In this document: in pieces, positions 3,222-59,444 of the stretch
Numbering within the stretch: position 1 is the first letter of the stretch
Layout of the letters: each line of letters starts with the position of its first letter
Source of the DNA: Paramoeba atlantica
Lineage: Eukaryota > Protista > Discosea
Direction of reading: 5' to 3'
Assembly (NCBI GenBank): GCA_977017575.1
Contig: CDRNVI010000139.1
Coordinates: 248,001 to 312,000 of the forward strand
Length of the DNA stretch: 64,000 bases
Program-made: the position numbers and the translations under genes
The notes under the pieces: generated by a model
What the model was told of the DNA's origin: nothing
The model's database searches: none
What the model saw: only the letters and a program-made list of their open reading frames with translations

Positions 3222-4785
3222 ATGAGTGAAAAAAGAGGAAAAAGAAAGAGAGGAGGAGAAGAAACAGAATTAGAGAGTGAGAAAAAGAGAAAAACCAAAA
3301 GAGGAAAGAAAGAGAAAGAAGATCAAAGAACAGATTGTGGTGATGATGATGTTGTTGTTGTGATTGAAGATAACGATGATGAAAAAGACCAAAGAGGGGG
3401 AAAAAGTGAAGATGTTCTTGGAAAGAGAGAACAACAAGTGGGACAAAATGAAGGAGAATTTGAAGAAGAGAGAATGTTCAAAACACCCATCTGAAACAAT
3501 CTGTGGATATTGTTTTCAATGTTCTTCTTTTGTTTGTATTCGTTGTGTTCTCGGAACACATGATGATCACAGAAAGAAAGTGAAATCGATTGAAGAAAGT
3601 ATTTTAGAGAAAAGGAATGAAGTTGTGAGGATTGGAGATAAATTGGAGAAAAGATTGATTGAGATTGAAGCAGAAAGAAAAAGGATTGAAAAAGAAATGA
3701 AAGAATTAGAAGAGAAATTAGAAAAGAAAAGAATTGAAAAGAAAGAAATAGAATTAGAGAAAGAAGATTTGAGAATAAGAAAAGATTCAATTATTCGTTT
3801 ATCCAACACACCAACAACAACAACTGATTGTGATGTTTCTCTCTTTTTTGATGATCAACTTTTTTCAACTCTTCTTCAAACTGCAAATGATATTGTTTTT
3901 GAAGGAGGTGTTGTTGGATTATTCTCAAAACCAAAGAAAGGAGTGATTTGTTGTGATGGTGGCGGTGATTCGATTCGTTTTGTTTCTTCTTTTCCTTTGA
4001 AGAATCAACCTTTTGGAATGAGTGTGAACAGTGATGGGAATATTTTTATTTGTGGAGAGGAGGGTGGATTGAAAGTGAGAGATAAAGAAGGAAATGAGAT
4101 GATTGAATCAACAATTCAGAAAACAATTGATTCACTTCAGTTGGAGCCTGTTGATGTTTCAATTGGATTGGATGATCAAATTGTTATTCTTGATTGGTCT
4201 CAAGCTTGTTGTCGAGTTGTAATATTAAACAAAGAAGGAGAATTGATCAAATCTTTTGGATCAGTTGGTTTTGAAGAGGGTCAGTTTAATGAACCATTTG
4301 GTGTGGATGTGGATGAAGAAGGTAGAATTATTGTTGTTGATACTTTGAATCATCGAATTGAAGTGTTTGATAATGATGGATCTTTTCTTCATTCTTTTGG
4401 TTCAAAAGGTTCTTTTGAAGGTCAATTTTATGAACCAAGAAGTGTTGTAGTTGATAGAGATGGGAATATTGTTATTTCTGATTTTGGGCGAATTCAAGTG
4501 ATGGATATTGAAGGGAATTTTATTCGATGTTTTGGAACATTTGGTTCAGGTGATTCTCAATTGAACTATCCAGAAGGTGTTGATGTGGATGGGGAAGGTA
4601 GAATTGTTGTTTGTGAAGAAGGAAATGGGAGGGTGTGTGTGTTTGAGAAAGATGGAACATTTCTTTTTTCATTTGGTGCCAAACCTCACATGGGGGATCC
4701 TCGTGGGGTTGTTGTTGATTTATTTGGAACAATTATTGTTTCAGATTATGAGAAAAAGTCAGTTGAATTGTGGAAATCATTTTGA
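3222..4785 (+). pseudogene. TRIM-NHL paralog B, RING/intron/B-box1 deleted; B-box2-CC-NHL ORF remains in another frame
   Basis: ATG 3222 frame stops at 3494; the junction at ~3452 joins exon 1 to ENLKKRECSKHP through shared GGAGAA; ORF 3364-4785 holds B-box2, coiled coil and 6 NHL blades. Confidence 0.8.
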
Positions 4786-4789
4786 AAAG

Positions 4790-5950
4790 AGATGGAGGTT
4801 TTTTCTTTTCTTTTTTTCTTTTTTTTTTCTTTGCTTTTGATTTGTTTTATTTTATTATTTGTATCTTTTTTTTCTTTCTTTTTTCTTTTTGTTTCCTTTT
4901 TTGTTTGAAGAAAATTAAAAACAAGAAATTAATATTTTTTTCTCTTCTCTTCTCTTTTTCCCTTCCTCCCCTTCCTCCCTTCCTCCCCTTTTCTCCTTTT
5001 TAGTCTCTCGTGGTGCAGTGGTCTTCTTCTTCCCTAATCATCATTTTTGATTCGATTTTTTACCTTCAAAAACTTTTCTTGCTTTTCCTTCTCCTCTCTT
5101 TTTGTGTTATGTTTGTGTTGTGAAATTCTCTTTTCTCTTCTCTTTTTCAAAATTTTGTTGTTGTTAAAAAGAAATGATTCTTTTTTGATCTTTTGTGTCT
5201 TCCCCTTTGTTTTGTTTTTTGTTTTGTCGTTCTTTTGTTGTTGGAGGAATTCATATTTTGGTTAATTGAATGAGAGAAACACAATTTTTAGTAAATAAAA
5301 AAATTGAAATAGTATTCCACAAAAGGATCAAGAATTGAGAAAATTCCCCCCCCCTCCCCACAGCAAGGATTGAGAATAATATCACCCCACATCAAAAACA
5401 AAAAGAAACAACAAAATTGAGAGATAAAGAAAGAAAGAAAAGAAATCAAGAAGAAGAAAGAAAGAGATAAGAAACACACACAAAAGAAGTGAAGCGAGAA
5501 GGAGAAAGAAGGTCATTATTGGTCTGGAGAAAATCGAATAAGGTTTGAAGAAAATCAAAGCGAAAAATTGGGAAGAACACAACATCGTGCACCAGAGACT
5601 AAAAGGAAGGAAAAGGGAGGGAAGAAAAGAGAAAAGGGGGAGGAGAGGGGAGAAAGAGAAGGTGTTGAGAAAACTCACATATTCAAAATTAATTTCTTTT
5701 TCTTTTTTCACAAGAAAAAGAAAAAAACAAGTTTCACAAAAAAAAAGGAAAAAAACTCAATCAACCCATCACCAACCAAGAAAAATACACAAAAATACAC
5801 AAAATGAACAATTTTAAAGAACAAAAATAATTTTTGAAAGAACAAAAGACAAAAAATCATTTTTGTTGATCTCCCCCAAAAGAAAAAAAAAACACAAATA
5901 AAAACAAAGAACAAAAAACACAAATTTGACAAAATGAGAGAAACCAAAAT
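4790..5950. repeat. Tail-to-tail spacer family 1 (also ~14445-15770, ~34775-36000, ~59450-61130)
   Basis: Shared GAAGAGTCATTATTGGTCTG, CCACAAAAGGATCAAG and GTGCACCAG(A)AGACTAAAA segments in the same order. Confidence 0.8.
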
Positions 5951-6058: not shown

Positions 6059-8284
6059 TCAAAATGATTTCCATAAATCAATTGCCATTTCATAATCTGA
6101 AATAATAATTGTTCCAAATGAATCAATAACAACCCCATTAGGAGTCTCCATGTGATCTTGACCAAACGAAAAAAGAAAGGTTCCATCTTTCTCAAACACA
6201 CTCACTCTCCCATTTTCTGTATCACAAACAACAATTCTACCTTCCCCATCAACACCAACACCTTCTGGATACTTGAGTTGAGAAACACCTGAACCTTTTG
6301 TTGCAAAACATCGAATAAAATTCCCTTCAATATCTATCACTTGAATTCGATGATTCCCAGTATCAGAAATAACAATATTCCCATCTCTATCAACTGCAAC
6401 ACTTCTTGGTTGATTAAATTGCTTAAATTGACCTTTAAAAAATCCTATTGAACCAAAAGAACGAAGAAAAGATCCATCATTATCAAACACTTGAATTCGA
6501 TCATTCAAAGTATCACAAACAATAATTCGACCTTCTTCATCCACATCCACACCATGTGGTTCATTAAACTGACCATCTTCAAAACCAACTGATCCAAAAG
6601 ATTTGATCAATTCTCCTTCTTTGTTTAAGATTACAACTCTATGAGAATGTTGAGACCAATCAAGAACAACAATTTGATCATTCAATCCAATTGAAACATC
6701 AACAGGTTGCAATTGAAGTGAATCAATTGTTTTCTGAATTGTTGATTTAATCATCTCATTTCCTTCTTTATCTTTCACTCTCAATCCACCATCCTCTTCA
6801 CAAATAAAAATATTCCCATCACCGTTCACACTCACTCCCAAAGGATATTTCTTCAAAGAAAAAGAAGAATCACGTGAAACTCCACCACCATCACAACAAA
6901 TCACTCCTTTCTTTGGTTTTGAGAATAATCCATCAACAACTCCTTCAGAAACAATATCATTTGCAGTTTGAAGAAGAGTTGAAAAAAGTTGATCATCAAA
7001 AAAGAGAGAAACATCACAATCAGTTGTTGTTGTTGTTGTTGTTGTTGTTGGGGTGTTGGATAAACGAATAATTGAATCTTTTCTTATTCTCAAATCTTCT
7101 TTCTCTAATTCTATTTCTTTCTTTTCAATTCTTTTCTTTTCTAATTTCTCTTCTAATTCTTTCATTTCTTCTTCAATCCTTTTTCTTTTCCCTTCAATCA
7201 AAATCAATCTTTTCTCCAATCTATCTCCAATCCTCACAACTTCATTTCTCTTCTCCAAAATACTTTCTTCAATCGATTTCACTTTCTTTCTGTGACCATC
7301 ATGTGTTTCAAGAACACAACGAATACAAACAAAAGAAGAACATTGAAAACAATATCCACTGATTGTTTCAGATGGGTGTTTTGAACATTCTCTCTTCTTC
7401 AAATTCTCCAATCCCGCCACCCCCTCCTCTTCCAATCTTCTTCTTCCACCTCCCTCAACACCATCTCTTTCAGATCGTTTGTGATTTCGAGTGAAAAGAG
7501 TTGAAGTGTGAGAAGAATCACAAGAATCACAAATAAACATCTCACATTGGAAACAAAACATTCGAGTTTGTTCTCCACATGTTTCAAAATTCGCACATTC
7601 TGATCCACCATCTCCTATTTTGGTTTCTTTTTCATCAATTCAAGAGAAAAGGGAAGGTTGAAAAAGAAAAGAGACAATAAATTAAGAAAACGAAAAAAAA
7701 CTTGATTGTTGGGATAAAGAAATCAAATTTGAAGAAAGAAGAACATCAATCGTTTCTGGAATCAAATAATTCATTGTAAGTGTCTCAATGCTTTCACATT
7801 CGTTCATTTCTCTACAAACTGGACATTTCACTCCTTTCAAAAAAGAAGAGGAAGAGGAAGAAGAAGAGGGAGAAGAAGAAGAAGAAGAAGAAGAAGGCTT
7901 TTGAAGAAGAAAGAGTTTGTTGAGGCAAAGAGAACAAAAAGAAAGACCACAACAAGGTAACAACCTTGGTTCTTTTTCCCAATTCATCAACTCCAAACAG
8001 GTTCCACATTCAAATCTTTTCTTTTTCTCTTCTTCTTTCTTTCTCCTTCTGTTCATCACCTCTTCTTCTTCTTCTCTTTCTCTTCCTTGTTGTTCTCTCT
8101 TTCCAAGAACATCCTTACTTCTTCTTTCTCTCTGTTTTATTTCATCATCTTCTTCAATCACAACAACATCAGCATCGTCACAATCTGTTGTTTGTTCTTC
8201 TTTCTCTTTCTTTCCTCTTTCTATTTTTCTCTTTTTCTCAGTTTCCAATTCTCCTCTCTTTCTCTTTCCACTATTTTCACTCAT
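6059..8284 (-). CDS. TRIM-NHL paralog C, apparently intact (~712 aa)
   Basis: Exon 1 8284-7702, intron 7701-7615 (GT..AG, phase 1), exon 2 7614-6059; frames join without stops. Confidence 0.88.
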
Positions 8285-8898: not shown

Positions 8899-11680
8899 CC
8901 TCCTCTCTTCTCTCTTCTCTCTCTTCTCTCTCTTCTCTCTCTTCTCTTTCTTTTCTCTCTTCTCTCTTCTCTTCTCTCTTTCTTGTCGTTGTTGTTGTTG
9001 GTGGTTTCATTTTGGAACAGCTTTTTTTGAGAGTTTTTTTTTAGATTTTGGAATCCTCTTTGGCTTCGTTTTGTTTCATTTAGAGACAATTTGTTTTTGG
9101 AACTCTCTCTCTCTTTCATTGAGACCCTTCTTTTCGTTTTCGTTTGGGTCTCTTTGACAAATTGTTTTTGGACTTCTTCTCTCATTTTTTCGCTCTTTTT
9201 TTCTTCTTTGGTGTTTCTTTCATATTTTGGAGCTTCTTTGAGGGTTTTATTTTGTTTGGATTTTTCACTTTCTTCTTCTTTGCCAAAGAATCCTTTCGTG
9301 ACTTTTTGAGAGATGTTTGTTTTTTTTTTATTTTCTTTTTTCTCTTCTTTTTATTCCATTTTTGAAAAAAAAAATTGTCAGAAACCTCTCGATCTCTCTC
9401 TCTCTCTCTCTCTTTGGAGGACATTCTTTAAGAATTGGTTTCTCTCCGTTGTTCCTCTTTTTATTTGTCTTTTGTTTTGGCAAGAGCAGTCTCTTTGTGG
9501 GGTGATTCTTCTTTGTCATTTTCATTTTCAATCTCTCCATTTTCTTTAAAATTGTTCCCTTTTCACATTTTCTTTCCATTTTGTTTGTTGATTAATCTTT
9601 TTTCCCACACAGAGAGACAAAATGAGTGAAAAAAGAGGAAAGAGAAAGAGAGGAGGAGAACAAGGAACAGAATTAGAAAGTGAGAAAAAGAGAAAAACCA
9701 AAAGAGGAAAGAAAGAGAAAGAAGATCAAAGAACAGATTGTGGTGATGATGATGTTGTTGTGATTGAAGACGCTAGTGATGATGAAAAAGAACAAAGAGA
9801 AAGAAGAAGTGAAGATGTTCTTGGAAAGAAAGAACAACAAGTGGGACAAAATGAGGAGAAAGAGAAAGAGCAGAAGAAGTAGTGATGAAAAGGAGAAGAA
9901 AGGAAGAAGAAGAGAAAAAGAAAAGATTTGAATGTGGAATATGTTTGGAATTGATGAATTGGGAAAAAGAACCAAGGTTGTTACCTTGTTGTGGTCTTTC
10001 TTTTTGTTCTCTTTGTCTCAACAAACTCTTTCTTCTTCAAGATCCTTCTTATTCTTCTTCCTCTTCTTTCTCATCTCCCTCTCCCTCTTCTTCTTCCTCT
10101 TCTTCCGATTCTTTGAAAGGAGTGAAATGTCCAGTTTGTAGAGAAATGAACGAATGTGAAAGTGTTGAGACACTTTCGATGAATTATTTGATTCCAGAAA
10201 CGATTGATGTTCTTCTTTCTTCAAAGTTAATCTCTTTCTTCAATCAATCAGGTTTTCTCTCCACTTTTTGAGCTCTCACTTTCTTTCCTCTTCCTCTCTT
10301 TTTTTCTTTTTTTTTGAGAGAAAATGATTTCAAAGTTGAAAAACTTTTATTTTTTAATAAACAAAACAACAGGAGATGAATCAGAATGTGTGAATTTCGA
10401 AACATGTGGAGAACAAACTCGAATGTTTTGTTCTGATTGTAAAGTATTCATTTGTGATTCTTGTGATCCATCTCACACTTCTTCTGTTTTCACTCGAAAT
10501 CACAAACGATGTGAAAGAGATGGTGTTGAGAGAGGTGGAAGAAGAAGATTGGAAGAGGAGGGAGGGGTGGTGGTGGGAGTGGGATTGGAGAATTTGGAGA
10601 AGAGAGAATGTTCAAAACACCCATCTGAAACAATCAGTGGATATTGTTTTCAATGTTCTTCTTTTGATTGTCTTCGTTGTGTTCTTGGAACACATGATGA
10701 TCACAGAAAGAAAGTGAAATCAATTGAAGAAAGTACTTTGGAGAAGAGGAATGAAGTTGTAAAGATTGGAGATAAATTGGAGAAAAGATTGGTTTTGATT
10801 GAGAGGAAAAGAAAAAGGATTGAAAAAGAAATGAAAGAATTAGAAAAGAAATTAGAAAAGAAAAGAATTGAAAAGAAAGAAATAGAATTAGAGAAAGAAG
10901 ATTTGAGAATAAGAAAAGATTCAATTATTCGTTTATCCAACACACCAACAACAACAACAACAACAACAACTGATTGTGATGTTTCTCTCTTTTTTGATGA
11001 TCAACTTTTTTCGACTCTTCTTCAAACTGCAAATGATATTGTTTCTGAAGGAGGTGTTGTTGGATTACTGAAACCAAAGAAAGGAGTGATTTGTTGTGAT
11101 GGTGGTGGTGATTCTTTTCGTTTTGTTTCTTCTTTTCCTTTGAAGAATGGACCTTTTGGAGTGAGTGTGAACAGTGATGGGAATATTTTTATTTGTGAAG
11201 ATGGGGTTGGTGGATTGAAAGTGAGAGATAAAGAAGGAAATGAGATGATTGAATCAACAATTCAGAAAACAATTGATTCACTTCATTTGAAACCTGTTGA
11301 TGTTTCAATTGGATTGGATGATCAAATTGTTGTTCTTGATTATTCTCAAGATTGTTGTCGAGTTGTGATATTAAACAAAGAAGGAGAATTAATCAAATCT
11401 TTTGGATCAAGAGGTTCTGAAGATGGTCAGTTTAATGAACCATATGGTGTGGATGTGGATGAAGAAGGTAGAATTATTGTTTGTGATACTTTGAATAATC
11501 GAATTGAAGTGTTTGATAATGATGGATCTTTTCTTCATTCTTTTGGTTCAAAAGGTTCTTCTGAAGGTCAATTTAATCGACCTTCTAGTGTTGGAGTTGA
11601 TAGAGATGGGAATATTGTTATTTCTGATTCTTGGAATCATCGGATTCAAGTGATGGATATTGAAGGGAATTTTATTCGAT

Positions 11681-14179
11681 CGGGTTCCTTCCAGGGGGGC
11701 CTAATTAGTCTTTTTGGGCCTAATTAGGCTCCTGTTTGTTGGCCAAAATAAAGCTCATTTTTGAACTTTTTTTTTTTTTTTTACTTTCTTTTGCGTTTCT
11801 TTGAGGTTTTTTCTTGATTTTCATCACAATGCCTTTCTCAGAAAGTCTGAATGAAAAAAGTTACAGTGGTGAGAAAAATGAGTTCTGGATCAACTTCCCC
11901 AAGAATTGAAGAATTGAAGGAGGGTACTATTTGGTTCTGCAAAGCTGTGAACCTTCGCCCTTCTCATCTTCTAAGGAAACATTTTGGTGACCAATATCAA
12001 GGAGCATCTCTCTCTTCACTCAGGGTGAAAAGGGTGGAACTTCAGAACTATGACAGGAAATCTCAGATGGTAGTTTTGCTTCGTTCTCCTGTCTTCCAGA
12101 ATGATTACCTTCTGGCTCTCCCTGAAAATTTAAAGTTTGTCGGAGAAGTGGATGTCTCAGAGGGTTGTGGGACTTCAACTCATCCATCTTCATCTTCATC
12201 ATCCTCTTCTGGCTCAGAAGGATCAAGTTCTGGTTCATCCCAGGCATCAACAACCTCTGTGCCTGTTTTGGGCTCATCTGATACTGATGATGAAGATACT
12301 GAATCTTGCTCTGATATTGAGGAGGAAGGGGAAGACAATGCAGCAGAACTCGTTGAAAATGATCTTTCCTTTGTTTCTGAGTGGTCTTCCTCAACAACTG
12401 ATGCTCGTGCTGTGATAGGAGCACAAGACCTCAAGGCCTGTACAAGAATTCGCTTTGATGCTGTTCATGTCCCCACTCCCCTAGATATTTTTCTCCAAGT
12501 TCTGCCTCTAACCTTTCTAAAAACTGATGTGCTGAAAGCAACAAATGAGTTTAACCGTTCTTTGAACTTCACTGAAGCTGAAATGCTTGATTTTATTGCC
12601 TTGCGCCAGATTATGTCTTTCTACCCAGGACATAAAAGAAGGGATTTTTTTCGAATTTCAAAGGATTCAGCTGGATCTTCCTTGCGTGGTACACTGCCTT
12701 ATCTTGGGAAATATATCAGTAGAAATCGGTTTGATATGATTGTCTCCTCTCTTAAACTTGCTCCTCTCTCTGCAAAACCCTCTTACACAGACCGTATGTG
12801 GGAAATTCGACCCCTGATTGCTGCTTTTAATGAAAAGATGAAGACCATCTTTGTTCCAAGTTGGCAAGTCTGTCTGGATGAGTCTATGGTGGTGTGGTTT
12901 TGTAAATGGGCTCCTGGTTGGATGTTTGTTCAGAGGAAACCTCATCCTTTTGGAAATGAATATCATACAATTGGTTGTGGGGAGACTAGAGTGATATTCT
13001 TTCTTGAAATTGTGGAAGGAAAGTCCCATCCTTCTGAAATGGGCCTGCCCAAGTTTCAACCTCCATCTGGTTCTGGAGCGAAAACTGTTGGTTTAATGCT
13101 TAGAATGACTGAGGGAATTTGGGGAACTGGTCGAGTAGTTGCTTTGGATAGTGGTTTTTGTGTGTTGGAAGGTTGTATTCAACTTCTGGAAAAGGGATTG
13201 TATTGTACTTCAGTTGTGAAGAAAAAACGATATTGGCCCAAAGGAATTCCAGGGGAAGAGATTGTTGCACACCTCAAGGAGAAGGAACCTGGTTATGTGA
13301 AAGTGAAGAAAGGATCTCTGAGAGGTCATAAATTCTATGTGGAGGCTTTCCAAGATGTTCATCACTCTTCTATAATGATTAATACCTGGGGAACTTCTTT
13401 TCCCACTGGTCGCCCATGAAATCGCAAGCTTGAAGGCCAAAGACTCTCCCTGCGATATACTCAGCCTCTTGACTTTTACTATCAAACCAGGCATTGTGTG
13501 GATGATCACAACCAACTGAGGCAAGGTTCTCTCTTCTTGGAGAGTTCCTGGAAGACCAAAAAATGGGTCCACAGGCAGTTTGCTTTCATTCTTGTAGTTG
13601 TGGAAGTCAATGCCTTCCTCATATTTCAGCACTTTTTCCCTCAAGCCAAAGAGCTCTCCTTTGCAGAATTTCGTTTTGAGGTTGCCCAAGGTCTACTCTC
13701 TCAGAATCATCCCTTGGATGAAGGCTATAACCTGCGAATACCACTCCCAACTCATGTAGAACATCATCTGATGATCAAGCCCAACTTTGCTGGAGTTTGG
13801 TGAAATGGTAATTGGACTGAAGCCAGACAAGAGTACCAGAAGAGTAGATGCAATGGGACAAATTGTACAAAGAAAGTTCGAACCTATTGCTCCTGTGATC
13901 AAACACTCATTTTTTGTTCAGGTTGCTTTGCTGACCATATGAGCAGGCACATGACTGAGGACTAATTAGTCCTTTTGAAAAATGATGATTTTTTTTTTTT
14001 TGGTGACTCAATTTTTTTTTTCAAAAAACAATATTTGGACAAATATTTCTTGATATTCTTGTTTAAAAGATCTTTATTAAAAAGTTTATCAAAAAAAATC
14101 TCCCCTCCACCCACCAGTGGCTTCAAAAAAGGAGTCAAAAATAGGGGCCTAATTAGTCTTTTGGCCTGGAAGGAACCCG
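11681..14179 (+). mobile_element. piggyBac-like DNA transposon, copy 1 (2499 bp)
   Basis: TIR CGGGTTCCTTCCAGG at 11681-11695 and 14165-14179; TSD CGAT (11677-11680, 14180-14183); empty site TTTATTCGATGTTTTGG is seen in sister paralogs; subterminal CTAATTAG at 11701, 11720, 13962, 14149. Confidence 0.93.
11851..13965 (+). pseudogene. piggyBac-family transposase with two in-frame TGA (13417, 13801)
   Basis: Motifs VCLDESMV, VALDSGF, HCVDDHN (DDD triad); C-terminal Cys-rich domain CNGTNCTKKVRTYCSCDQTLIFCSGCFADH; copy 2 has CGA at both stops. Confidence 0.87.
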
Positions 14180-15773
14180 CGATGTTTTGGAACATTTGGT
14201 TCAGGTGATTCTCAATTGAACTCTCCAGAAGGTGTTGATGTGGATGGGGAAGGTAGAATTGTTGTTTGTGATGGAGGAAATGAAAGAGTGAGTGTGTTTG
14301 AGAAAGATGGAACATTTCTTTTTTCATTTGGTACCAAACATCACATGGGGGATCCTGGTGGGGTTGTTATTGATTCATTTGGAACAATTATTGTTTCAGA
14401 TTATGTGAAAAATTCAATTGAATTGTGGAAATCATTTTGAAAAGAGATGGAGGTTTTTTCTTTTCTCTTTTTTTCTCTTTTTTGATTTTGATTTGTTTTA
14501 TTTTATTATTTGTATCCTTTTTCCATTATTTTTCTTTTTGTTTCCTTTTTTGTTTGAAGAAAATTAAAAACAAGAAATTAAGATATTTTTCTCTTCTCTT
14601 CTTCTCTTTTCCCTTCCTACCCTTCCTCCCCTTCCTCCCCTCCTCCCTTTTCTCCTTTTTCGTTTCTGTTGTGGTGTGCAGTGGTCTTCTTCTTCCCCCC
14701 CAAAATCATCATCATTCTTCTTCCAATTTTTGATTCGATTTTTGATCCTTCTTCTTCAAAAACACTTTTCTTTGATTTTGTTTCTCCTCTTCATTTGTGT
14801 TTTATTGTTGTTGTGTGTGTTTTGTGTTTTTGTGAAAGTTCTCTCTCTTTCTCTTCCTCTTCTCTTTTTTTTGATTTAAATTATTTTTCTATTTTTGTTT
14901 TCAAATTTTGTTGTGTTGGAAGGAAATGATTCTTTTTTGTTGCCCAGTCTTTTTTTGCCTATTCTTTTTTTTTTTCTTTTTTTTTTGTTATTGGGGAGTA
15001 ATTCATATTTTTAATAAACAAAAAAATTGAAAAATAGTATTCCACGAAGGGGTCAAGAATTTGAGAAAATTCCCCCCCCACATCAAAAACAAATGAGAGA
15101 TGAAGAAAGAAAGAAAAAGGGAAAGAAGAGTCATTATTGGTCTGTGGAGTGAGGTTTTTTTTTGACAGGCACTTTTTTTCTTGTTCTCGTTTTCTTCAAT
15201 TCCGAGAAGAAATTCCTTTGAGATTTTGTTCCCAAACACCCTCTCTTGCCAAGTTCCAAAAAGAAATGGATTTGAAAGATTTAATGAAACATGGAGTTCC
15301 AACAAAAAAAATCAAAAGGGGGAAGGAATGTGAAGTGAGGGAGAGGAGGAGAGGAGAGAAAGAAGAGTCATTATTGGTCTGTGGAGGAAATCGAAAAAAA
15401 TGGTTTGAAAGAAGAAGAATAAAAACAAAGCGAAAAATTGGGAACAAAAAGAATACCCCAACATTTTGTGCACCAGAAGAGACTAAAAAGAAAGGAAAAG
15501 GGAGGGAACGAAAGAGATAAAAATCGAATCAAAATTGAAGAAGAAGGTGATTGGAAAAGAAGAAGACCACACCACACCAGAACAGAGACTAAAACTAAAA
15601 AGAAGGGGGAAGGAGGGGAGGAGAGGGGGAAAAGAGAAAAAATTAATTTCTTTTCATTTTCCTCTCAAAACAAGAAAAAAAAGGAAACAAAAAATTAAAA
15701 ATGAAAATCAAAAAAAGAAAAAAAAATAAGAGAAAAGATGAAAAAAAAAATCAAACCCTTTCCTCCATCTCTT

Positions 15774-18028
15774 TCAAAATGATTTCCAAAATTCAATTGA
15801 CTTTTTCTTATAATCTGAAACAATTACTGTTCCAAATGAATCAACAACAACCCCTTGAAGATTCTCCACGTGATGTTTACCAAATGAAAAAAGAAATGTT
15901 CCATCTTTCTCAAACACACTCACTCTTTCATTTTCTGAATCACAAACAACATTTCTACCTTCCCCATCCACATCAACACTTGTTAGATAATCGAATTGAG
16001 AATCACCTGAACCAAATGTTCCAAAACATCGAATAAAATTCCCTTCAATATCCATCACTTGAATTCGATGATTCCCAGAATCACAAATAACAATATTCCC
16101 ATCTCTATCAACTACAACACTCATAGGTTGATCAAATTGACCTTCAGAAGAACCTTCTGAACCAAAAGAACGAAGAAAAGATCCATCATTATCAAACACT
16201 TCAATTCGATGATTCCAAGTATCACAAACAATAATTCTACCTTCTTCATCCACATCCACACCATATGGTTCATTAAACTGACCATCTTTAGAACCTTTTG
16301 ATCCAAAAGATTTGATCAATTCTCCTTCTTTGTTTAATATTACAACTCTATGAGAATCTTGAGAATAATCAAGAACAACAATTTGATCATTCAATCCAAT
16401 TGAAACATCATAAGGTTTCAACTGAAGTGAATCAATTGTTTTCTGAATTGTTGATTCAATCATCTCATTTCCTTCTTTATCTCTCACTTTCAATCCACCA
16501 TTCTCTTCACAAATAAAAATATTCCCATCACTGTTCACACTCACTCCCCAAGGCCCATTCTTCAAAGGAAAAGAAGAAACAAAACGAAAAGAATCACCAC
16601 CACCATCACAACAAATTACTCCTTTCTTTGGTTTGAGTAATCCAACAATCCCTCCTTCAAAAACAATATCATTTGCAGTTTGAAGAAGAGTCGAAAAAAG
16701 TTGATCATCAAAAAAGAGAGAAACATCACAATCAGTTGTTGTTGTTGTTGTTGTTGTTGGTGTGTTGGATAAACGAATAATTGAATCTTTTCTGATTCTC
16801 AAATCTTCTTTCTCTAATTCTATTTCTTTCTTTTCAATTCTTTTCTTTTCTAATTTCTCTTCTAATTCTTTCATTTCTTTTTCAATTCTTTTTCTTTTTT
16901 CTTCAATCAAAATCAATCTTCTCTCCAATTTATCTCCAATCTTTACAACTTCATTCCTTTTCTCTAAAATACTTTCTTCAATCGATTTCACTTTCTTATT
17001 GTGTTGAACGTGTGTTTCAAGAATACAACGAATACAAACAAAAGAAGAACATTGAAAACAAAATCCACAAATTGTTTCAGATGGGTGTTTTGAACATTCT
17101 CTCTTCTTCAAATTCTCCAATCCCACTCCCACCACCCCACCCTCCTCTTCCAATCTTCTTCTTCTTCCACCTCTCTCAACACCATCTCTTTTAGATCGTT
17201 TGTGATTTCGAGTGAAAATAGAAGAAGAGTGAGAAGAATGATCACAAGAATCACAAATAAAGACTTTACAATCAGAACAATACATTCGAGTTCGTTCTCC
17301 ACATGTTTCGAAATTCGCACATTCTGATCCACCATCTCCTGTTGTTTTGTTTTCAAAAAACATGTTTTTTCAATTTTGAAATAACTTTCTCTCGAAAACA
17401 GAAAGAAAGAAAGAAAACCTGGTTGGTGGGAGAAAGAAATCAAATTGGAAGAAAGAAGAACATCAATCGTTTCTGGAATCAAATAATTCATCGAAAGTGT
17501 TTCAATCGCTTCACATTCGTTCATTTCTCTACAAACTGGACATTTCACTCCTTTCAAAGAAGAAATGGGAGAGGGAGAAGGGGAAGAAGAAGAAGAAGAG
17601 GAAGAAGAAGAAGGATCTTGAATCAGAAAGAGTTTGTTGAGACAAAGAGTACAAAAAGAAAGACCACAACAAGGTAACAACCTTGGTTCTTTTTCCCAAC
17701 TCATCAATTCCAAACACATTCCACATTCAAATCTTTTCTTTTTCTCTTCTTCTTCCTTTCTTCTTCTTTTCATCACCACTTCTTCTTCTCTTTCTCTTTC
17801 TTCCTCTCCTTCATTTTGTCCCACTTGTTGTTCTCTCTTTCCAAGAACATCCTCATTTCTTCTTTCTCTTTGTTCTTTTTCATCAACATTGTCATCTTCA
17901 ATTACAACAACAACATCTTCTTCTTCTTTCTCTTTCTTTCCTCTTTTGGTTTTTCTCTTTTTCTCACTTTCTAATTCTATTTCTCTTTCTCCCCCTCCTC
18001 TTTTTCTCTTTCCTCTTTTTTCACTCAT
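15774..18028 (-). CDS. TRIM-NHL paralog E, apparently intact (~724 aa)
   Basis: Exon 1 18028-17419, intron 17418-17339, exon 2 17338-15774. Confidence 0.88.
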
Positions 18029-24694: not shown

Positions 24695-24729
<35 letters not shown>

Positions 24730-31753: not shown

Positions 31754-31794
<41 letters not shown>

Positions 31795-31804
31795 GGAAGA
31801 AGAG

Positions 31805-31835
<31 letters not shown>

Positions 31836-42044: not shown

Positions 42045-44282
42045 TCAAAAAGATTTCCAAAATTTAATTGACTTTTTCTCATAATCTGAAATAATAATTG
42101 TTCCAAATGAATCAATAACAATCCCTTGAGGATATTTCATGTGATGTTTACCAAATGAAAAAAGAAATGTTCCATCTTTCTCAAACACACTCACTCTTTC
42201 ATTTTCTTTATCACAAACAACAATTCTACCTTCCCCATCCACATCAACACCTCTTGGATAATCGAATTGAGAAACACCTGAACCTCTTGATCCAAAACAT
42301 CGAATAAAATTCCCTTCAATATCCATCACTTGAATTCGATGATTTTTACAATCAGAAATAACAATATTCCCATCTCTATCAACTCCAACACTGTTTGGTT
42401 GATCAAAATGACCTTCAGAAGAACCTTTTAAACCAAAAGAACGACGAAAAGATCCATCATTATCAAACACTTCAATTCGATGATTCAAAGTATCAACAAC
42501 AATAATTCTACCTTCTTCATCCACATCCACACCACACGGACTCTTAAACTGACCATCTTCAGAACCTTTTGATCCAAAAGATTTGATCAATTCTCCTTCT
42601 TTGTTTAAGATTACAACTCGAAAAGAATCTTGAGACCAATCAAGAACAACAATTTGATCATTCAATCCAATTGAAACATCAACAGGTTCCAAATAAAGTG
42701 AATCAATTGTTTTCTGAATTGTTGATTCAATCATCTCATTTCCTTCTTTATCTCTCACTTTCAATCCATCCTCTTTACAAATAAAAATATTCCCATCACT
42801 GTTCACACTCACTCCTAAAGGTTGATTCTGCAAAGGAAAAGAAGAAACTAAACGAAAAGAATCACCACCACTAACACCTCCTTCAGAAACAATATCATTT
42901 GCAGTTTGAAGAAGAGTTGAAAAAAGTTGATCATCAAAAAAGGGAGAAACATCACAATCAGTTGTTGTTGTTGTTGTTGTTGTTGTTGGGGTGTTGGATA
43001 AACGAATAATTGAATCTTTTCTGATTCTCAAATCTTCTTTCTCCAATTCTATTTCTTTCTTTTCAATTCTTTTCTTTTCTAATTTCTCTTCTAATTCTTT
43101 CATTTCTTTTTCAATCCTTTTTCTTTTCTTTTCAATCAAAACCAATCTTTTCTCCAATTTATCTCCAACCTTTACAACTTCATTCCTTTTCTCTAAAATA
43201 CTTTCTTCAATTGATTTCACTTTCTCATTGTGTTGAACATGAGTTTCAAGAATACAACGAAGACAAACAAAAGAAGAACATTGAAAACAATATCCACTGA
43301 TTGTTTCAGATGGGTGTTTTGAACATTCTCTCTTCTTCAAATTCTCCAATCCCATCACTCCCACCACCCCTCCCTCCTCTTCCAATCTTCTTCTTCCACC
43401 TCCCCCAATACCATCTCTTTCACATCGTTTGTGATTTCGAGAGAAAATAGTTGAAGTGTGAGATGGATCACAAGAATCACAAATAAACATGTTGCAAAGA
43501 GGGCAAAACATTCGAGTTTGTTCTCCACATGTTTCGAAATTCGCACATTCTGATTCATCTCCTGTTGTTTTGTTTTTTCAACTTTGAAATCACTTTCTCT
43601 CAAAAAAAGAAAGAAAAAAAAGTGAGAGTTCAAAAAAAGAAAGAAAGAAAGAAAACCTGGTTGGTGGGAGAAAGAGATCAAATTTGAAGAAAGAAGAACA
43701 TCAATTGTTTCTGGAATCAAATAATTCATCGAAAGTGTTTCAACACTTTCACATTCGTTCATTTCTCTACAAACTGGACATTTCACTCCTTTCAAAGAAG
43801 AAATGGGAGAGGGAGAAGGGGAAGAAGGAGAAGAAGAGGAAGAAGAATAAGAAGGATTTTGAAGAAGAAAGAGTTTGTTAAGACAAAGAGAACAAAAAGA
43901 AAGACCACAACAAGGTAACAACCTTGGTTCTTTTTCCCAACTCATCAATTCCAAACATATTCCACATTCAAATCTTTTCTTTTTCTCTTCTTCTTCCTTT
44001 CTTCTTCTTTTCATCATCTCTTCTTCTCTTTCTCTTTCTCTTTCTTCCTTCTCTTTCTCCTTCATTTTGTCCCACTTGTTGTTCTCTCTTTCCAAGAACA
44101 TCTTCATTTCTTCTTTCTCTTTGTTCTTTTTCACCAACATTGTCATCTTCAATTCCAACAACAACATCAACATCATCTTCTTTGTCTTTCTTTCCTCTTT
44201 TGGTTTTTCTCTTTTTCTCAGTTTCTAATTCTGTTCCTTGTTTTTCTCCTCCTCTTTTTCTCTTTCCTCTTTTTTCACTCAT
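42045..44282 (-). CDS. TRIM-NHL paralog M, one +1 indel in a purine run of exon 1 (real or assembly error)
   Basis: Exon 1 44282-43657 is 1 nt too long (shift at ~44050); intron 43656-43562; exon 2 43561-42045 open, with an in-frame deletion before blade 1. Confidence 0.75.
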
Positions 44283-45448: not shown

Positions 45449-46594
45449 ATGAGTGGACAACAAGGAAAGAGAAAGAGAGAAGTGGTGAGAACTGAAAGTG
45501 AGGAGGAGAAACGAATTTCAAAAAGAGGGAAGAAAGAACAACTTGATGATGGTCTAGAACAGAGAGAAAAAAGAAGTGAGGATGTCTCTTTCTCCAATGA
45601 ATCAGGTTTTTTTTAGAAAAGAAAAGAGTTGAAAGAAAACAACTGATTCTGATCTTCCTCTTTTTTTTTTGATGATCAACTTTTTTCAACTCTTCTTCAA
45701 ACTGCAAATGATATTGTTTCTGAAGGAGGTGTTGTTGGATTACTCAAACCAAAGAAAGGAGTGATTTGTTGTGATGGTGGTGGTGATTCATCTCGTTTCG
45801 TTTCTTCTTTTCCTTTGAAGCAAGAAGTTTTAGGAGTGAGTGTGAACAGTGATGGGAATATTTTTGTTTGTGAAGGACCGCGTGGATTGAAAGTGAGAGA
45901 TAAAGAAGGAAATGAGATTAAATCATTTCAGAAAACAATTGACTCTCTTCAGTTGGAACCTGTTGATGTTTCAATTGGATTGAATGATCAAATTGTTGTT
46001 CTTGATCATTCTCAAGATTCTTTTCGAGTTGTAATGTTAAACAAAGAAGGAGAATCGATCAAATCTTTTGGATCAAAAGGTTCTGAAGATGGTCAGTTTA
46101 ATGGACCGTGTGGGGTGGATGTGGATGAAGAAGGTAGAATTATTGTTGCTGATACCGAAAATAATCGAATTGAAGTGTTTGATAATGATGGATCTTTTCT
46201 TCATTCTTTTGGTTCAAAAGGTTCTTCTGAAGGTCAATTTGACCAACCAAACAGCGTCGGAGTTGATAGAGATGGGAATATTGTTATTTGTGATAGTTGG
46301 AATCATCGGATTCAAGTGATGGATATTGAAGGGAATTTTATTCGATGCTTTGGAACAAGAGGTTCAGGTGTTTCTCAATTAAAGTCTCCAAAAAGTGTTG
46401 ATGTGGATGGGGAAGGTAGAATTGTTGTTTGTGATTCAGGAAATGGAAGAGTGAGTGTGTTTGAGAAAGATGGAACATTTCTTTTTTCATTTGGTAAACG
46501 CCACTTGAAAGGACCTTTTGGGGTTGTTATTGATTCATTTGGATCGATTCTTGTTTCAGATTGGCGGAAAAAGTCAATTGAATTGTGGAAATAA
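45449..46594 (+). pseudogene. TRIM-NHL paralog N, RING and B-box/CC deleted, NHL propeller ORF intact
   Basis: MSGQQGKRK start with early stop; EDV joined to SFSNES; intron remnant joined to the FFDDQLFST region; 45761-46594 open over six blades. Confidence 0.8.
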
Positions 46595-47056: not shown

Positions 47057-48826
47057 TTATTTCCACCATTCAATGACTTTTTTCTCCTTGTCAACAACAA
47101 TAATGGACCCAAAAGAATCAACAACAATCCCACGAGGTCTTTTCATGTGATGTTTACCAAATGAAAAAAGAAATGTTCCATCTTTCTCAAACACACTCAC
47201 TCTTTCATTTTTCCATTCAGAAACAACAATTCTACCTTTCCCATCCACAGCAACACTTCTTGGACACTCCAATTGAGAATCACCTGAACCTCTTGTTCCA
47301 AAACATCGAATAAAATTCCCTTCAATATCCATCACTTGAATCCGATGATTCCAATAATCACAAATAACAATATTCCCATCCCCATCAACTGTAACAGCAT
47401 AAGGTTTGTTAAACCGACCTTCAGAAGAACCTTTCGAACCAAAAGAACGAAGAAAAGATCCATCATTATCAAACACTTGAATTCGATGATTGAAAGTATC
47501 TGCAACAATAATTCGACCTTCTTCATCTACCCCAACTCCCCATGGTCCACTAAATTGACCATCTTTAGAACCTCTTGATCCAAAAGATTTGATCAATTCT
47601 CCTTCTTTGTTCAATATTACAACTCTCCTCGATTTTGACCAATCAAGAACAACAATTTGATCATTCAATCCAATTGAAACATTAATAGGTTCCAATTGAA
47701 GTGAATCAATTGTTTTCTGAATTGTTTCAATTGTGTTCCCTTCTTTATCTCTCACTCTCAATCCATCATTTTCACAAAGAAAAAAAAACCCATCTCTGTT
47801 CACACTCACTCCAAAAGGTTCATCCTTCAAAGGAAAAGAAGAAATAAAACGAATCGAATCACCACCACCATCACAACAAATCACTCCTTTCTTTGGTTTT
47901 GGGAATAATCCAACAACACCTCCTTCAGAAACAATATCATTTGCAGTTTGAAGAAGAATCGAATCGAAAAAAGTTGATCATCAAAAAAAAGAGAAGGATT
48001 AGTTGTTGTTGGGGTGTTGGATAAACGAATAATTGAATCTTTTCTGATTCTCAAATCTTCTTTCTCTAATTCTATTTCTTTCTTTTCAATTCTTTTCTTT
48101 TCTAATTTCTCTTCTAATTCTTTCATTTCTTTTTCAATCCTTTTTCTTTTCTCTTCAATCTCAATCAATCTTCCGTCCAATCTATCTCCAATCTTTACAA
48201 CTTTATCCCTTTTCTTCAATACACTCTCTTCAATCGATTTCACTTTCACTTTGTGTTTAACATGAGTTTCAAGAATACAACGAATACAAACAAAAAGAGA
48301 ACATTGAAAACAATATCCACTGATTGTTTCAGATGGGTGTTTTGGACATTCTTTCATCAACTCATTCCATCTCTCATCACTCCCATCTCTCCCATCAGTC
48401 CTTGAAAAGTTGATCTTGGTTCGTTGTTCACGTTTGTGATTTCGAGTGAAAATAGAAGAAGTGTGAGACGGATCACAGGAATCACAGATAAACATATTAC
48501 AACTGGGGCAGAACATTTCAGTTCGTTCTCCACACGTTTCAAAATTCGCACATTCTGATTCATCTCCTGTTTTTTTATGTTTTTCAATCAAAACTGAATT
48601 TGAGAAAAGAAGAAAAAAGGGGAAAATGAAAAAAAAAAAGGAACCTGGTTGGGATAAAGAGATCAAATTTGAAGAAAGAAGAACATCAATCGTTTCCGGA
48701 ATTAAGTAATTCATCACAAATATCTCAATGCTTTCACATTCGTTCACTTGACTGCAAACTGGACATTTCACTCCTTTCAAAGAGGATGAAGAAGATGAAG
48801 AGGAAGAGGGAGAGGGAGAAGGGGAA

Positions 48827-48857
<31 letters not shown>

Positions 48858-50430: not shown

Positions 50431-50567
50431 CTCGAAGAAAAGCAGGAAAAGAGAAGCAATTTATTTTTTTGCAGGTTTGATATTCACTTTCCTGGACCTT
50501 GGTTTCCCTTTTGCCTGAGAGATGAAAAGGGTGAGAAAAAGAAAAGAACCAACAAAAAAAGAAGAGG

Positions 50568-54043: not shown

Positions 54044-54287
54044 AAAAAAAATTTTGATCGAGAGCCATGGAAAGAATGGATCTCTTTTCCCCAAGTCGAA
54101 GGACAACACCAAAAGATTTTTTTTCCTTTTTTTGACTTTAAATGTGGTTTGAGAGGAGAGTTTTGGCTTTTGTTTTGTGTTATTTTGAAAGGTCGAGCTT
54201 GTGAATCACAACAATGAGGGTTTTTGGGTGGTGATGGAAGAAGAGAAATGACGCAAAAAACAAAATGGAATAAAATTTCATTTCTTC

Positions 54288-56434: not shown

Positions 56435-57278
56435 ATCAATGGATCGAGATTGTCCTCCCCCCATTCTCCCCACATCAGTTTAAACGGTCCTCTTTTCTCT
56501 TTCTTTTTCTCTTCTTTTTCCAAGAACCGAAACAAAACAAAATTAACCAGAACAAATTTTTTTCATCCCGTGTTCAATTCCCTTTCGGGATTCTTTTTTT
56601 TTCCTTTTTTTTCTTTTTTTTTTCGTTTTTTTTGTTTTTCCTCCCGCTCTTCTCTTCTCTTTTCTCTTCTCTCTTTCTTTTCTCTTTTGTCTCCGATTTT
56701 TTTTTTGGGATCACATTCTTTGGAAAAAACCTCAAGACAGCTTTTTTTGTTTCTTTTTCTTCTCCATTTTCCTTCCTCTTTTCTCTCTTCTCTCTCTTCT
56801 CTCTCTTTCTTTGTGCCTCTTTTTGGTCTTTTTGGGGTTGTTTTTGTCTTTCTTCTTCTTCTTCTTCTTTTGAGGTTTTTGGTTTTTGGGATCTCGTTCT
56901 CTCATCTTTTCGTTTGAATTGTCTTTCTTCTCCTTCTTCTTTGGTGGTTCCTCACTTTTTGAGAACTGTTTGTCTTTTTTCTTCTTTTTTTCTTTTTTTT
57001 TCTCGTATCTCAATTTATTGAAAAAACAATTCTCAGAAACCTCTTTCTCTCTCTCTCTCTTTGTGGGGACATCTCTATTTTCTTGATTGTTCCTCATTTC
57101 ATTTTGTTTTGGGTCTCAGCAGTCTCTTTGTGTGTGTGTGTGTATGTGTTGGGTGGGCATAGTTTTGGTTTCGTTTTCTTTTTCTTTTTCATTTCATTCT
57201 AATTTTGTGTGTGTGATTTTTAATTGTTTTTCCCTCCCTCACATTTCTTTTCTTTTCAATCCCACAGAGAGAGACAAA

Positions 57279-59444
57279 ATGAGTGAAAAAAGAGGAAAGA
57301 GAAAGAGAGGAGGAGGAGAAGAAACAGAATTAGAAAGTGAGAAAAAGAGAAAAACCAAAAGAGGAAAGAAAGAGAAAGAAGATGATGTTGATGTTGTTGT
57401 AATTGAAGATGACAATGTTGGTGAAAAAGAACAAAGAGAAGATGTTCTTGGAAAGAGAGAAGAAGAAGTGATGACTAAAAGAAGAAGAAAGGAAGAAGAA
57501 GAGAAAAAGAAAAGATTTGAATGTGGAATATGTTTGGAATTGATGAGTTGGGAAAAAGAACCAAGGTTGTTACCTTGTTGTGGTCTTTCTTTTTGTACTC
57601 TTTGTCTCAACAAACTCTTTCTTCTTCAAAATCCTTCCTCTTCTTCTTCTTCTTCTTCCTCTTTGAAAGGAGTGAAATGTCCAGTTTGTAGAGAAATGAA
57701 CGAATGTGAAAGCGTTGAAACACTTTCGATGAATTATTTGATTCCAGAAACGATTGATGTTCTTCTTTCTTCAAATTTGATCTCTTTCTCCCAACAACCA
57801 GGTTTTCTTTCTTCCTTTTATTGTGAGAAAGTTATTTCAAAGTTGAAAAAACATGTTTTTTGAAAAAACAAAACAATAGGAGATGGATCAGAATGTGTGA
57901 ATTTCGAAACGTGTGGAAAACAAACTCGAATGTTTTGTCCTCTTTGCAACATGTTTATTTGTGATTCTTGTGATCTGTCTCACACTTCTTCTATTTTCAC
58001 TCGAAATCACAAACGATGTGAAAGAGATGGTGTTGAGGGAAGAGGTGGAAGAAGAAGATTGGAAGAGGAAGGAGGGGTGGTGGGAGTGATGGGATTGGAG
58101 AATTTGAAGAAGAGAGAATGTTCAAAACACCCATCTGAAACAATCAGTGGATATTGTTTTCAATGTTCTTCTTTTGTTTGTCTTCGTTGTGTTCTTGAAA
58201 CTCATGTTCAACACAATGAGAAAGTGAAATCAATTGAAGAAAGTATTTTAGAGAAAAGGAATGAAATTGTAAAGGTTGGAGATAAATTGGAGAAAAGATT
58301 GATTGAGATTGAAAAGAAAAGAAAAAGGGTTGAAAAAGAAATGAAAGAATTAGAAGAGAAATTAGAAAAGAAAAGAATTGAAAAGAAAGAAATAGAATTG
58401 GAGAAAGAAGATTTGAGAATCAGAAAAGATTCAATTATTCGTTTATCCAACACACCAACAACAACAACAACAACAAAAACAACTGATTGTGATGTTTCTC
58501 TTTTTTTTGATGATCAACTTTTTTCAACTCTTCTTCAAACTGCAAATGATATTGTTTCTGAAGGAGGTGTTGTTGGATTACTGAAACCAAAGAAAGGAGT
58601 GATTTGTTGTGATGGTGGTGGTGATTCTTTTCGTTTTGTTTCTTCTTTTCGTTTGAAGAATCAACCTTTAGGAGTGAGTGTGAACAGTGATGGGAATATT
58701 TTTGTTTGTGAATTTCGGGGTGGATTGAAAGTGAGAGATAAAGAAGGAAATGAGATGATTGAATCAACAATTCAGAAAACAATTGATTCACTTCAGTTGA
58801 AACCTGTTGATGTTTCAATTGGATTGAATGATCAAATTGTTGTTCTTGATTGGTCTCAAGATTCTCATAGAGTTGTAATATTAAACAAAGAAGGAGAATT
58901 GATCAATTCTTTTGGATCAGTTGGTTCTAAAGATGGTCAGTTTAAGAGTCCATGTGGTGTGGATGTGGATGAAGAAGGTAGAATTATTGTTTGTGATACT
59001 TTGAATAATCGAATTCAAGTGTTTGATAATGATGGATCTTTTCTTCGTTCTTTTGGTTTAAAAGGTTCTTCTGAAGGTCAATTTGACCAACCTCAGAGTG
59101 TTGTAGTTGATAGAGATGGGAATATTGTTATTTCTGAGACTTTGAATCATCGAATTCAAGTGATGGATATTGAAGGGAATTTTATTCAATGTTTTGGAAC
59201 ATATGGTTCAGGTGATTCTCAATTGCACTGTCCAAAAGGTGTTGATGTGGATGGGGAAGGTAGAATTGTTGTTTGTGATAGAGGAAATAGAAGAGTGAGT
59301 GTGTTTGAGAAAGATGGAACATTTCTTTTTTCATTTGGTAAACATCACATGAAGAATCCTATTGGGGTTGTTGTTGATTCATTTGGAACAATTATTGTTT
59401 CAGATAATGAGAAAAAGTCAATTCAATTTTGGAAATCATTTTGA
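57279..59444 (+). CDS. TRIM-NHL paralog P, apparently intact (~695 aa)
   Basis: Exon 1 57279-57801, intron 57802-57879, exon 2 57880-59444. Confidence 0.88.

Follow-up and report, generated by a model that had tools for sequence, protein, structure and literature searches.

A tandem family of TRIM-like NHL genes with diversifying selection on one face of the propeller

The stretch analyzed here (the window) comprises 64,000 nucleotides of the forward strand of contig CDRNVI010000139.1 (positions 248,001 to 312,000) in the assembly listed for Paramoeba atlantica (GCA_977017575.1). A tblastn search revealed ~18 tandem copies of one two-exon gene, distributed over both strands of the window. The encoded proteins join a TRIM-like module to a six-blade NHL propeller, and the residues by which the copies differ most are concentrated on one face of this propeller, where they evolve under diversifying selection. 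Taking all data together, we consider it probable that the copies belong to a family of ~100 TRIM-like genes in which a constant scaffold presents ~30 top-face residues under strong diversifying selection, and that this family constitutes a recognition repertoire. The window is AT-rich (33-38% GC) and the genome to which it belongs is characterized by 34% GC, intergenic spacers of roughly 1 kb and introns of 70-130 nt. For a neighbouring CLU gene the best named matches, in a homology search whose length filter hides CLU proteins of full length from animals, were Pelomyxa (36%) and Balamuthia (32%), and its cluster in a protein atlas consisted mostly of Euglenozoa. The genome thus looks protist-like, a small animal being a less likely host.

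Using one of the copies (c17) as a query, we recovered ~97 family proteins with an identity of at least 47%, all of which originated from a single metagenome assembly in ENA, on contigs of 4-150 kb. At least 85 of these proteins were at most 93% identical (nearly all at most 90%) to every copy in the window, and they therefore represent further paralogues and not haplotigs. Outside the family the identity dropped to 27-36%, and there bacterial NHL proteins were mixed with animal TRIM-NHL proteins. With ~18 copies in 64 kb and ~97 family proteins, the genes form a lineage-specific tandem expansion. That the family is functional is indicated by the ten large exons in the window that are intact, with reading frames of ~500 codons, and by the ~60-70% of codons that show a ratio of replacement to silent substitution rates (omega, or dN/dS) below 0.1.

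A complete copy consists of a RING exon, a GT-AG intron of 70-130 nt and a large exon. In c17, whose large exon serves as the reference for residue numbering (residue 1 at 57897), exon 1 is located at 57279..57800 (+) and encodes an acidic/basic low-complexity region followed by an all-Cys RING-like finger with a poly-Ser insertion (Pfam RING E ~1e-4, below the cut-offs). The intron (57801..57879, +) measures 79 nt and the large exon extends over 57897..59441 (+), as deduced from Pfam, tblastn and an AlphaFold2 (AF2) model. In the large exon, Pfam and the translations place B-box1 and B-box2 first, then a long coiled coil that a poly-Thr linker separates from a linker helix, and finally the six NHL repeats. 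The NHL match (PF01436) reached 101 bits and the B-box matches (PF00643) 35.6-38.2 bits at a cut-off of 24.1; in c05 two stretches matched the latter. The AF2 model, for which an 89-sequence alignment was used as input, contains a continuous helix of 72 residues (113-184), a linker helix (206-222) and a propeller of 24 strands in six blades of four strands each, with a predicted local distance difference test score above 90. In c17 this propeller covers residues 245-515 (58629..59441, +). Within the coiled coil, hydrophobic residues recur at roughly heptad-like spacing over 82 members. The best Foldseek matches were the NHL domains of Thin/TRIM32, TRIM71/LIN-41, TRIM2/3, Brat and Mei-P26 (23-36% identity, E 4e-27 to 1e-16). 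The proteins thus have the B-boxes and the long coiled coil of TRIM/RBCC proteins and the C-terminal six-blade NHL propeller of the TRIM-NHL subfamily. A filamin domain was not found in the family proteins; TRIM32/Thin likewise is not known to have one. Two low-complexity runs differ in size between the copies: the Ser (Ser/Pro) run between the third and fourth Cys pairs of the finger ranges from ~8 to more than 50 residues (e.g. 57279-57800 and 31525-32157), and the poly-Thr run between the coiled coil and the linker helix is of variable length as well.

The remaining copies were located by tblastn, for the most part in combination with open reading frames (ORFs). Intact large exons supported by both were found for c03 (6062..7594, -; RING exon in ORF 7682-8284), c06 (20121..21662, +; RING exon in ORF 19355-20074), c07 (22912..24432, -; RING exon in ORF 24517-25080) and c13 (39918..41462, +; RING exon in ORF 39081-39881), and equally for c10 (30102..31400, -; RING exon in ORF 31525-32157), which is intact with a shorter N-terminus without B-box1. 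The intact large exons of c05 (15777..17318, -), c12 (36009..37547, -) and c14 (42048..43544, -) were identified by tblastn. Five copies are broken. In c04 (10390..14437, +; tblastn) blade 5 is split by a mobile element, c08 (26942..28017, +) suffers from a frame change and stops in blade 3, and c11 (33563..34770, +) is a truncated pseudogene that stops in blade 3 and is followed by small tail fragments. The NHL ORF is intact in c15 (45761..46591, +), which is broken upstream, and in c16 (47060..48549, -), which has a frameshift near 47960; the latter four are supported by tblastn and ORFs. Finally, two copies are cut by the ends of the window: c01, of which the B-boxes, the coiled coil and NHL blades 1-4 remain in the large exon (1..1242, -; tblastn and ORFs) and the RING exon lies within ORF 1353-2108, and c18, of which an NHL tail is left (63769..63999, -; tblastn). 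Copy c02 (3454..4782, +; tblastn, ORFs and alignment) retains B-box2, the coiled coil and the NHL domain and has lost the RING and B-box1. The deletion joined a frame-shifted acidic leader straight to B-box2 and left an intact ORF (3364-4785) without RING and B-box1, the product of which is possibly a RING-less decoy, unless the copy is a pseudogene.

The position of the intron is kept in 10 of 11 copies and the introns are T-rich. A contig of the RNA-labelled run X5 ends at 57797, after which 15 letters follow that correspond exactly to the predicted exon 1/exon 2 junction of c01; a DNA run, unlike the X5 contig, reads on into the intron at the same place. To this limited extent, the family can be said to be transcribed and spliced. 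The short-read Logan contigs of this multi-copy family were too fragmented for an analysis of expression or alleles and yielded this one spliced junction. The donor sites read GTTTYY, with a T at +3 where a purine is usual, and for the c01 junction the site is backed by the one spliced contig. In c16 the reading frame of ORF 47881-49284 runs on through the intron.

An original prediction, made from the window alone, had listed residue triplets around the first Pro of the NHL blades that differ between otherwise similar copies. All of the triplets were recovered: in blade 1 QPF/YPL/GPW/ESY/RPY within the alignment of 14 copies and LPR in a truncated copy at 33461-34648, in blade 3 EPF/EPH/DPY/RPW/DPC/SPC/GPW, in blade 4 EPR/RPS/QPM/NPH/KPY/GPS/QPN/QPQ, in blade 5 YPE/YLT/DPI/CPR/SPD/SPK and in blade 6 DPR/TPN/NLQ/YPH/RPR/NPI/GPF. 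Behind the blade Asp, the residues vary as proposed too (W/Y/L/C/H; DT followed by L/W/E/F). The x-P-x of blade 2, which was absent from the list, is less variable, and the list can be extended with positions in the long d-a loops, e.g. residues 342, 436, 443-445 and 483-487 of c17. The pattern is real and far beyond chance. In the consensus of 82 members there is no majority residue exactly at the x-P-x, at the two residues after the Asp of each blade and at a few positions of the long inter-blade loops. Family-wide, 20 positions of the whole protein have an entropy above 2.8 bits, and all 20 are situated in NHL top loops or are first residues of strand a.

The same prediction described the coiled coil as almost invariant, which is correct for its C-terminal half and not for residues 113-146, which vary. 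The core of 41 residues (147-187; 58335..58457, + in c17) carries 0-2 substitutions in each of 12 copies, its omega is 0.073 and its mean entropy over 82 family members amounts to 0.44 bits. The two-fold codons of the core (Lys, Glu, Asp) are identical in 21 of 21 cases in ~25 copies and its four- and six-fold codons vary as they do elsewhere. Given that the latter are no more uniform in the core than in the NHL scaffold, the invariance of the core is part of the general constraint on the scaffold (omega 0.07). Within the variable N-terminal half, an omega above 1 is supported for residue 137 (58305-58307 in c17) by a posterior above 0.98 in each of the two gene sets described below. It adjoins the core residue Ile138 and alternates between E, L, V, I, F and W; judged by this position it could tune pairing preference.

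To quantify selection, codon likelihoods were calculated under the Goldman-Yang F3x4 model in our own implementation, using IQ-TREE branch lengths with a free scale. The log-likelihoods (lnL) of model M0 agreed with IQ-TREE to four decimals, both for the window set (-7663.847) and for a replicate set (-7354.553) that consisted of 14 different paralogues from four other contigs and was disjoint from the window set. For the window set lnL was -7278.06 under M1a, -7146.26 under M2a, -7292.42 under M7 and -7151.44 under M8. Twice the lnL difference (2dlnL) was 263.6 for M2a versus M1a, with 6.6% of the sites at omega 6.5, and 282 for M8 versus M7; across the models the positively selected class held 6.6-7.3% of the sites at omega 5.9-6.5. 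A posterior above 0.9 was obtained for 22 sites, of which 19 are in the NHL domain. In c17, the codons of the selected NHL sites start at 58662, 58668, 58713, 58716, 58851, 58866, 58920, 58992, 59001, 59088, 59094, 59139, 59142, 59202, 59223, 59226, 59280, 59361 and 59406. The replicate set gave a 2dlnL of 247.9, with 8.6% of the sites at omega 5.45 and 33 selected sites, and 17 of the 22 window sites recurred in it where 1.4 would be expected by chance.

It is well known that recombination may inflate site-model tests. As the pairwise homoplasy index (PHI) test on the whole exon was significant (p=0.009), separate trees were used per segment. Restricted to the ten intact copies, these yielded a 2dlnL of 53.9 and 60.3 for the two halves of the NHL domain and of 141.7 for the whole domain, so that the class with omega above 1 persists. 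The 24 positions that were defined beforehand by the original prediction had an omega of 2.1 relative to the dS of their own codons (p=0.0055), while the other NHL positions together had an omega of 0.44. The proportion of replacement differences (pN) at the selected codons was 0.47 in the window set as well as in the replicate set. The proportion of silent differences (pS) was 0.14 and 0.11, respectively, in the four flanking codons and 0.06 and 0.04 more than four codons away. Scaled to the silent rate of the flanking codons, the dN of the selected codons corresponds to a ratio of 4.6 (confidence interval (CI) 3.1-7.2) in the window set and 6.6 (CI 4.3-11.2) in the replicate set. The predicted diversifying selection is thus borne out by a rejection of neutrality in two gene sets and by the elevated omega of predefined sites.

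In the NHL propeller the b-c and d-a loops form one face and the a-b and c-d loops the opposite one. The former define the top surface, which binds RNA in Brat (Loedige et al., PMC4015489). The union of the two sets comprises 31 selected NHL sites, of which 25 are in top loops, five are at the upper end of strand a, directly behind the blade Pro, and one is in strand b. None of the 57 bottom-loop residues was selected (Fisher p=1.5e-6 for top versus bottom). Had the prediction been wrong, the variable sites would be expected to be buried or scattered; they are neither, and lie on the b-c and d-a loops. The family-wide entropy agrees with this distribution (top loops 1.61 bits, strands 0.84, bottom loops 0.52), and the bottom loops are also the most conserved class in terms of omega (0.27-0.37). 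The signature at the selected sites was unique in each of 82 proteins (82/82; mean pairwise difference 0.82).

Measured against the remainder of the domain, over-representation at the selected sites is strongest for Tyr (28-fold), followed by Trp (12-fold), His (6-fold), Cys (3-fold), Lys (2.0-fold) and Arg (1.7-fold), whereas Val, Ile and Pro are depleted there. A composition rich in Tyr, Trp and His is typical of protein-binding hot spots. The net charge of the top loops, taken as a crude count of residues over top-loop columns and not as electrostatics, averages -1.5 and ranges from -17 to +8, compared to +4 to +6 for the TRIM71-like sequences that were aligned with the family; the bottom face is acidic throughout (-13.6). 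By this count, the positively charged top surface that would suit RNA was not found. RNA-binding NHL domains have been reported to have positive top surfaces and non-RNA NHL domains negative ones (Loedige et al., PMC4015489). Given the non-uniform charge of the top and the Tyr/Trp/His-rich sites, RNA is not the favoured class of ligand. The proposal that the variable loops make up the ligand-binding top face, with RNA-binding relatives as its model, hence stands with respect to topology (PMC4015489) and less so with respect to the ligand. On the basis of these residues, diversified proteins or other non-RNA ligands seem likelier than diversified RNA targets, although some paralogues may well bind RNA.

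Silent diversity follows the selected codons at short range. At conserved codons it is 0.10 when adjacent to a selected codon, 0.05-0.075 at a distance of 2-4 codons, 0.023 at 4-8 and 0.013 beyond 8 (Spearman rho -0.31, p=6e-6). Partitioned M0 fits agree, with a silent change per codon on the tree of 0.8-1.2 in the top loops versus 0.15-0.30 in the bottom loops. The very short range of this footprint suggests very short conversion tracts or clustered mutation. Moreover, the segment trees are mutually discordant, and c04 and c13 share an identical blade-4 motif without being sisters elsewhere. We infer a form of concerted evolution, in which exchange between paralogues homogenizes the scaffold and selection keeps the contact codons different; linked silent differences would then survive only beside the contact codons, because the rest is homogenized while differences at those codons are preserved.

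How such a family would work can be outlined as follows. The scaffold, made up of beta-strands and bottom loops together with the linker helix and the C-terminal half of the coiled coil, is held near constant, presumably in part through the exchange between paralogues. In every blade the d-a and b-c loops differ, so that each paralogue displays a different surface, rich in Tyr, Trp, His, Arg and Lys. Each could in this way bind a different ligand via its top face. The shared RING/B-box/coiled-coil module, a predicted ubiquitin ligase (E3), would couple recognition to ubiquitylation, either of the target or, as a signal, of the protein itself upon clustering. The family would then be a germline repertoire for the recognition of viruses, intracellular bacteria, prey, or foreign or kin cells. 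An invariant coiled coil would in addition permit mixed dimers. Heterodimerization, which had been suggested by the original prediction, is plausible in view of the coiled-coil sequence and would explain why the coiled coil cannot drift, but a shared partner protein explains this equally well. A more far-reaching version, which we regard as possible and put forward tentatively, is that a protist independently built ~100 intracellular germline receptor-ligases with an antibody-like, Tyr/Trp-rich NHL paratope on a scaffold that short-tract exchange keeps uniform, in which mixed dimers could multiply the specificities and which serve in defence against viruses or intracellular bacteria or in self/non-self recognition.

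Several observations argue against the probable reading of a diversified repertoire on a TRIM scaffold, or at least temper it. The two gene sets are disjoint and yet of shared ancestry. When silent changes of the selected codons themselves are used, omega is only 1.4-2.3, which can be attributed to the fact that 40-45% of the codon pairs differ at two or three bases, such that averaging over paths inflates dS. Per-site tests by fixed effects likelihood on 14 sequences were mostly non-significant, at low power and confounded by the same two- and three-base differences; given this outcome, we relied on random-site models, predefined partitions and flanking-codon dS. In a partition by structure only, the top loops as a whole reach an omega of 0.8-1.0 and do not exceed 1, because conserved Gly, Asp, Pro and Asn are mixed with the hypervariable positions. 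The faces were assigned from the strand order in DSSP, i.e. by topology and not from 3D coordinates. As for the ligase part, the RING matches (zf-RING_2, RING_UBOX and RING_5; E 7e-5 to 1e-3) all remain under the curated cut-offs, and the finger has eight Cys (C-x2-C...CC-x4-C-x2-C...C-x2-C) with the poly-Ser insert and misses the usual His. As for exchange, the PHI test within the NHL domain gave p=0.295, and in a GENECONV-like scan 4 of 66 pairs had p<0.01, the lowest global p being 0.061.

The latter two results bear directly on the question whether exchange is ongoing. It is conceivable, be it somewhat unlikely, that there is none and that the genes multiplied in tandem in one very recent burst, after which directional positive selection rapidly changed the contact residues. 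The absence of globally significant conversion tracts and the PHI result within the NHL domain would fit such a course, and so would the star-like tree and the silent divergence of only 0.04-0.06 far from the selected sites. A burst is harder to reconcile with the drop of silent diversity with distance from the selected codons, with the discordant segment trees and the significant whole-exon PHI, and with the blade-4 motif that is common to the non-sister copies c04 and c13, and it would require a single explosive event to bring all ~100 members to a similarly low silent divergence. Whether the ligands are RNAs is a separate matter. If RNA were bound by the top faces, as it is in Brat and LIN-41/TRIM71, the paralogues would be regulators of translation that differ in their RNA targets. 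The solved structures that come closest are indeed RNA-binding TRIM-NHL domains that use the same top face for RNA, Lys and Arg are raised at the selected sites, and aromatic residues are able to stack on bases as well. Against this, the mean charge of the top faces is slightly negative where that of TRIM71-like sequences is positive, the polarity reported for RNA-binding and other NHL domains (PMC4015489) points the other way, and ~100 fast-diversifying RNA regulators per cell would be without precedent. Taken together this makes RNA targets a doubtful explanation.

The remaining alternatives concern the origin of the variation. Targeted mutation at the variable codons, clustered over several bases or templated as in diversity-generating retroelements, would produce the observed excess of two- and three-base differences and the raised silent diversity of neighbouring codons. 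Nevertheless, the silent rise next to the selected codons is a few-fold where the replacement rise is more than tenfold, each codon position varies among the four bases without adenine bias, and the differences are fixed between germline paralogues. Reading the translations of the window revealed no reverse transcriptase and the alignments no adenine-specific changes; among the ORFs of at least 180 amino acids in the window (judged by reading, with Pfam on four ORFs) nothing recognizable was coding-like beyond the TRIM-like genes and two piggyBac transposases, which belong to the only mobile elements seen. Targeted mutation is thus very improbable. We give hardly any credence to unconstrained loops or the decay of pseudogenes as a cause of the variation. 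Loops do tolerate change and several copies are broken, but the class with omega ~6 outperforms omega = 1 by a 2dlnL of 142-264, the set of intact copies included, the bottom loops are equally exposed and are yet the most conserved, and the composition of the selected sites is biased to Tyr, Trp and His and not random. The chance that a collapsed or chimeric repeat family in the assembly created the pattern, which the high fragmentation of the short-read contigs of the family might suggest, is next to negligible: the assembly is of long-read style with multi-copy contigs of 12-150 kb, the same pattern is present on five independent contigs, the sequence occurs in four DNA runs and frames of ~500 codons are intact.

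The diversified repertoire that we favour can be compared to three groups of known systems. The animal TRIM-NHL proteins (TRIM32/Thin, TRIM71/LIN-41, TRIM2/3, Brat and Mei-P26) have the same order of RING (here a RING-like finger), B-box(es), coiled coil and six-blade NHL domain and are similar over the full length, e.g. with 27% identity over 97% of the query for a Patella protein. In these proteins the ligands bind to the top face of b-c and d-a loops (PMC4015489), the face that carries the selected sites here. The differences are as clear. Animals have 3-5 conserved single-copy members (PMC4015489) where the present family has ~100 young tandem paralogues with hypervariable top faces, the charge of these top faces is not consistently positive, and the RING-like finger is all-Cys with a poly-Ser insert. 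In the classification of Marin 2012 the TRIM-NHL subfamily (class VII; Marin subfamily C) is restricted to animals, whereas the present host appears to be a protist.

With respect to the mode of evolution, expanded TRIM ligases of vertebrates are a second group to consider. Diversifying selection on their recognition domains is a hallmark of antiviral restriction factors, and the finTRIM/btr genes of fish are a lineage-specific tandem expansion of TRIM E3s with selection on the loops of the B30.2 domain. In TRIM5alpha and TRIM22 of primates (PMC3845644) the RBCC scaffold is conserved and positive selection concentrates on surface loops of the C-terminal recognition domain, as in the present family. 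The recognition domain of TRIM5alpha, TRIM22 and finTRIM is a B30.2/SPRY beta-sandwich where here it is an NHL propeller, and these are vertebrate families with known antiviral roles, unlike the family described here. The evolutionary behaviour of the latter is in fact closer to that of the HNWD NOD-like receptors (het-d/e/r) of Podospora anserina, in which diversifying selection acts on two codon pairs of each WD40 blade, located at the propeller top, and concerted evolution homogenizes the rest (PMC2873952). The evolutionary anatomy is nearly identical, the counterparts here being residues i and i+2 on either side of the blade Pro and the two residues that follow the blade Asp. The fungal proteins combine a WD40 propeller with a STAND NTPase/HET cell-death module, as opposed to an NHL propeller with a predicted RING E3 here. 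Furthermore, exchange in HNWD takes place between nearly identical repeats, both within and between genes, whereas the blades of the present family are by eye about half identical and the signal of exchange is weak.

A full-text search of the literature returned no report of a hypervariable repertoire of NHL propellers. The kind of system, a diversifying recognition repertoire on a TRIM scaffold, is known; new is the NHL propeller as its recognition domain, apparently in a protist. Hypervariable propeller tops are a mark of fungal non-self receptors, and if the host is a protist, the family suggests that a single-celled organism has a recognition repertoire based on E3 ligases, and bears on the question how early cell-autonomous immunity and the TRIM architecture arose. 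Should the more far-reaching version hold, TRIM5/finTRIM and the fungal propeller NOD-like receptors would have a counterpart among the protists. In any case it provides a natural library of ~100 variants of one very stable scaffold with ~30 defined surface positions, which is useful for the study and engineering of propeller-based binders.

Apart from the tandem genes the window contains few other features. The array has a gap of 7.8 kb (49300-57100) with no long ORFs besides one of 177 amino acids at 50568-51101 (-), the C-terminal half of which resembles, by eye, the C-terminal helices of 14-3-3 proteins; it proved too divergent to serve as a marker of taxonomy. The mobile element inside blade 5 of c04 (11681-14179) is a piggyBac-like element of 2,499 bp with perfect terminal inverted repeats of 15 bp. 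It is flanked by a 4-bp CGAT target duplication, not TTAA, and its transposase ORF is shortened to 522 amino acids. Considering that the host reading frame is intact on either side of the element, the insertion is recent. A second piggyBac copy is located near the end of the window (ORF 61418-63466, -) and encodes a full DDE_Tnp_1_7 transposase of 682 amino acids.

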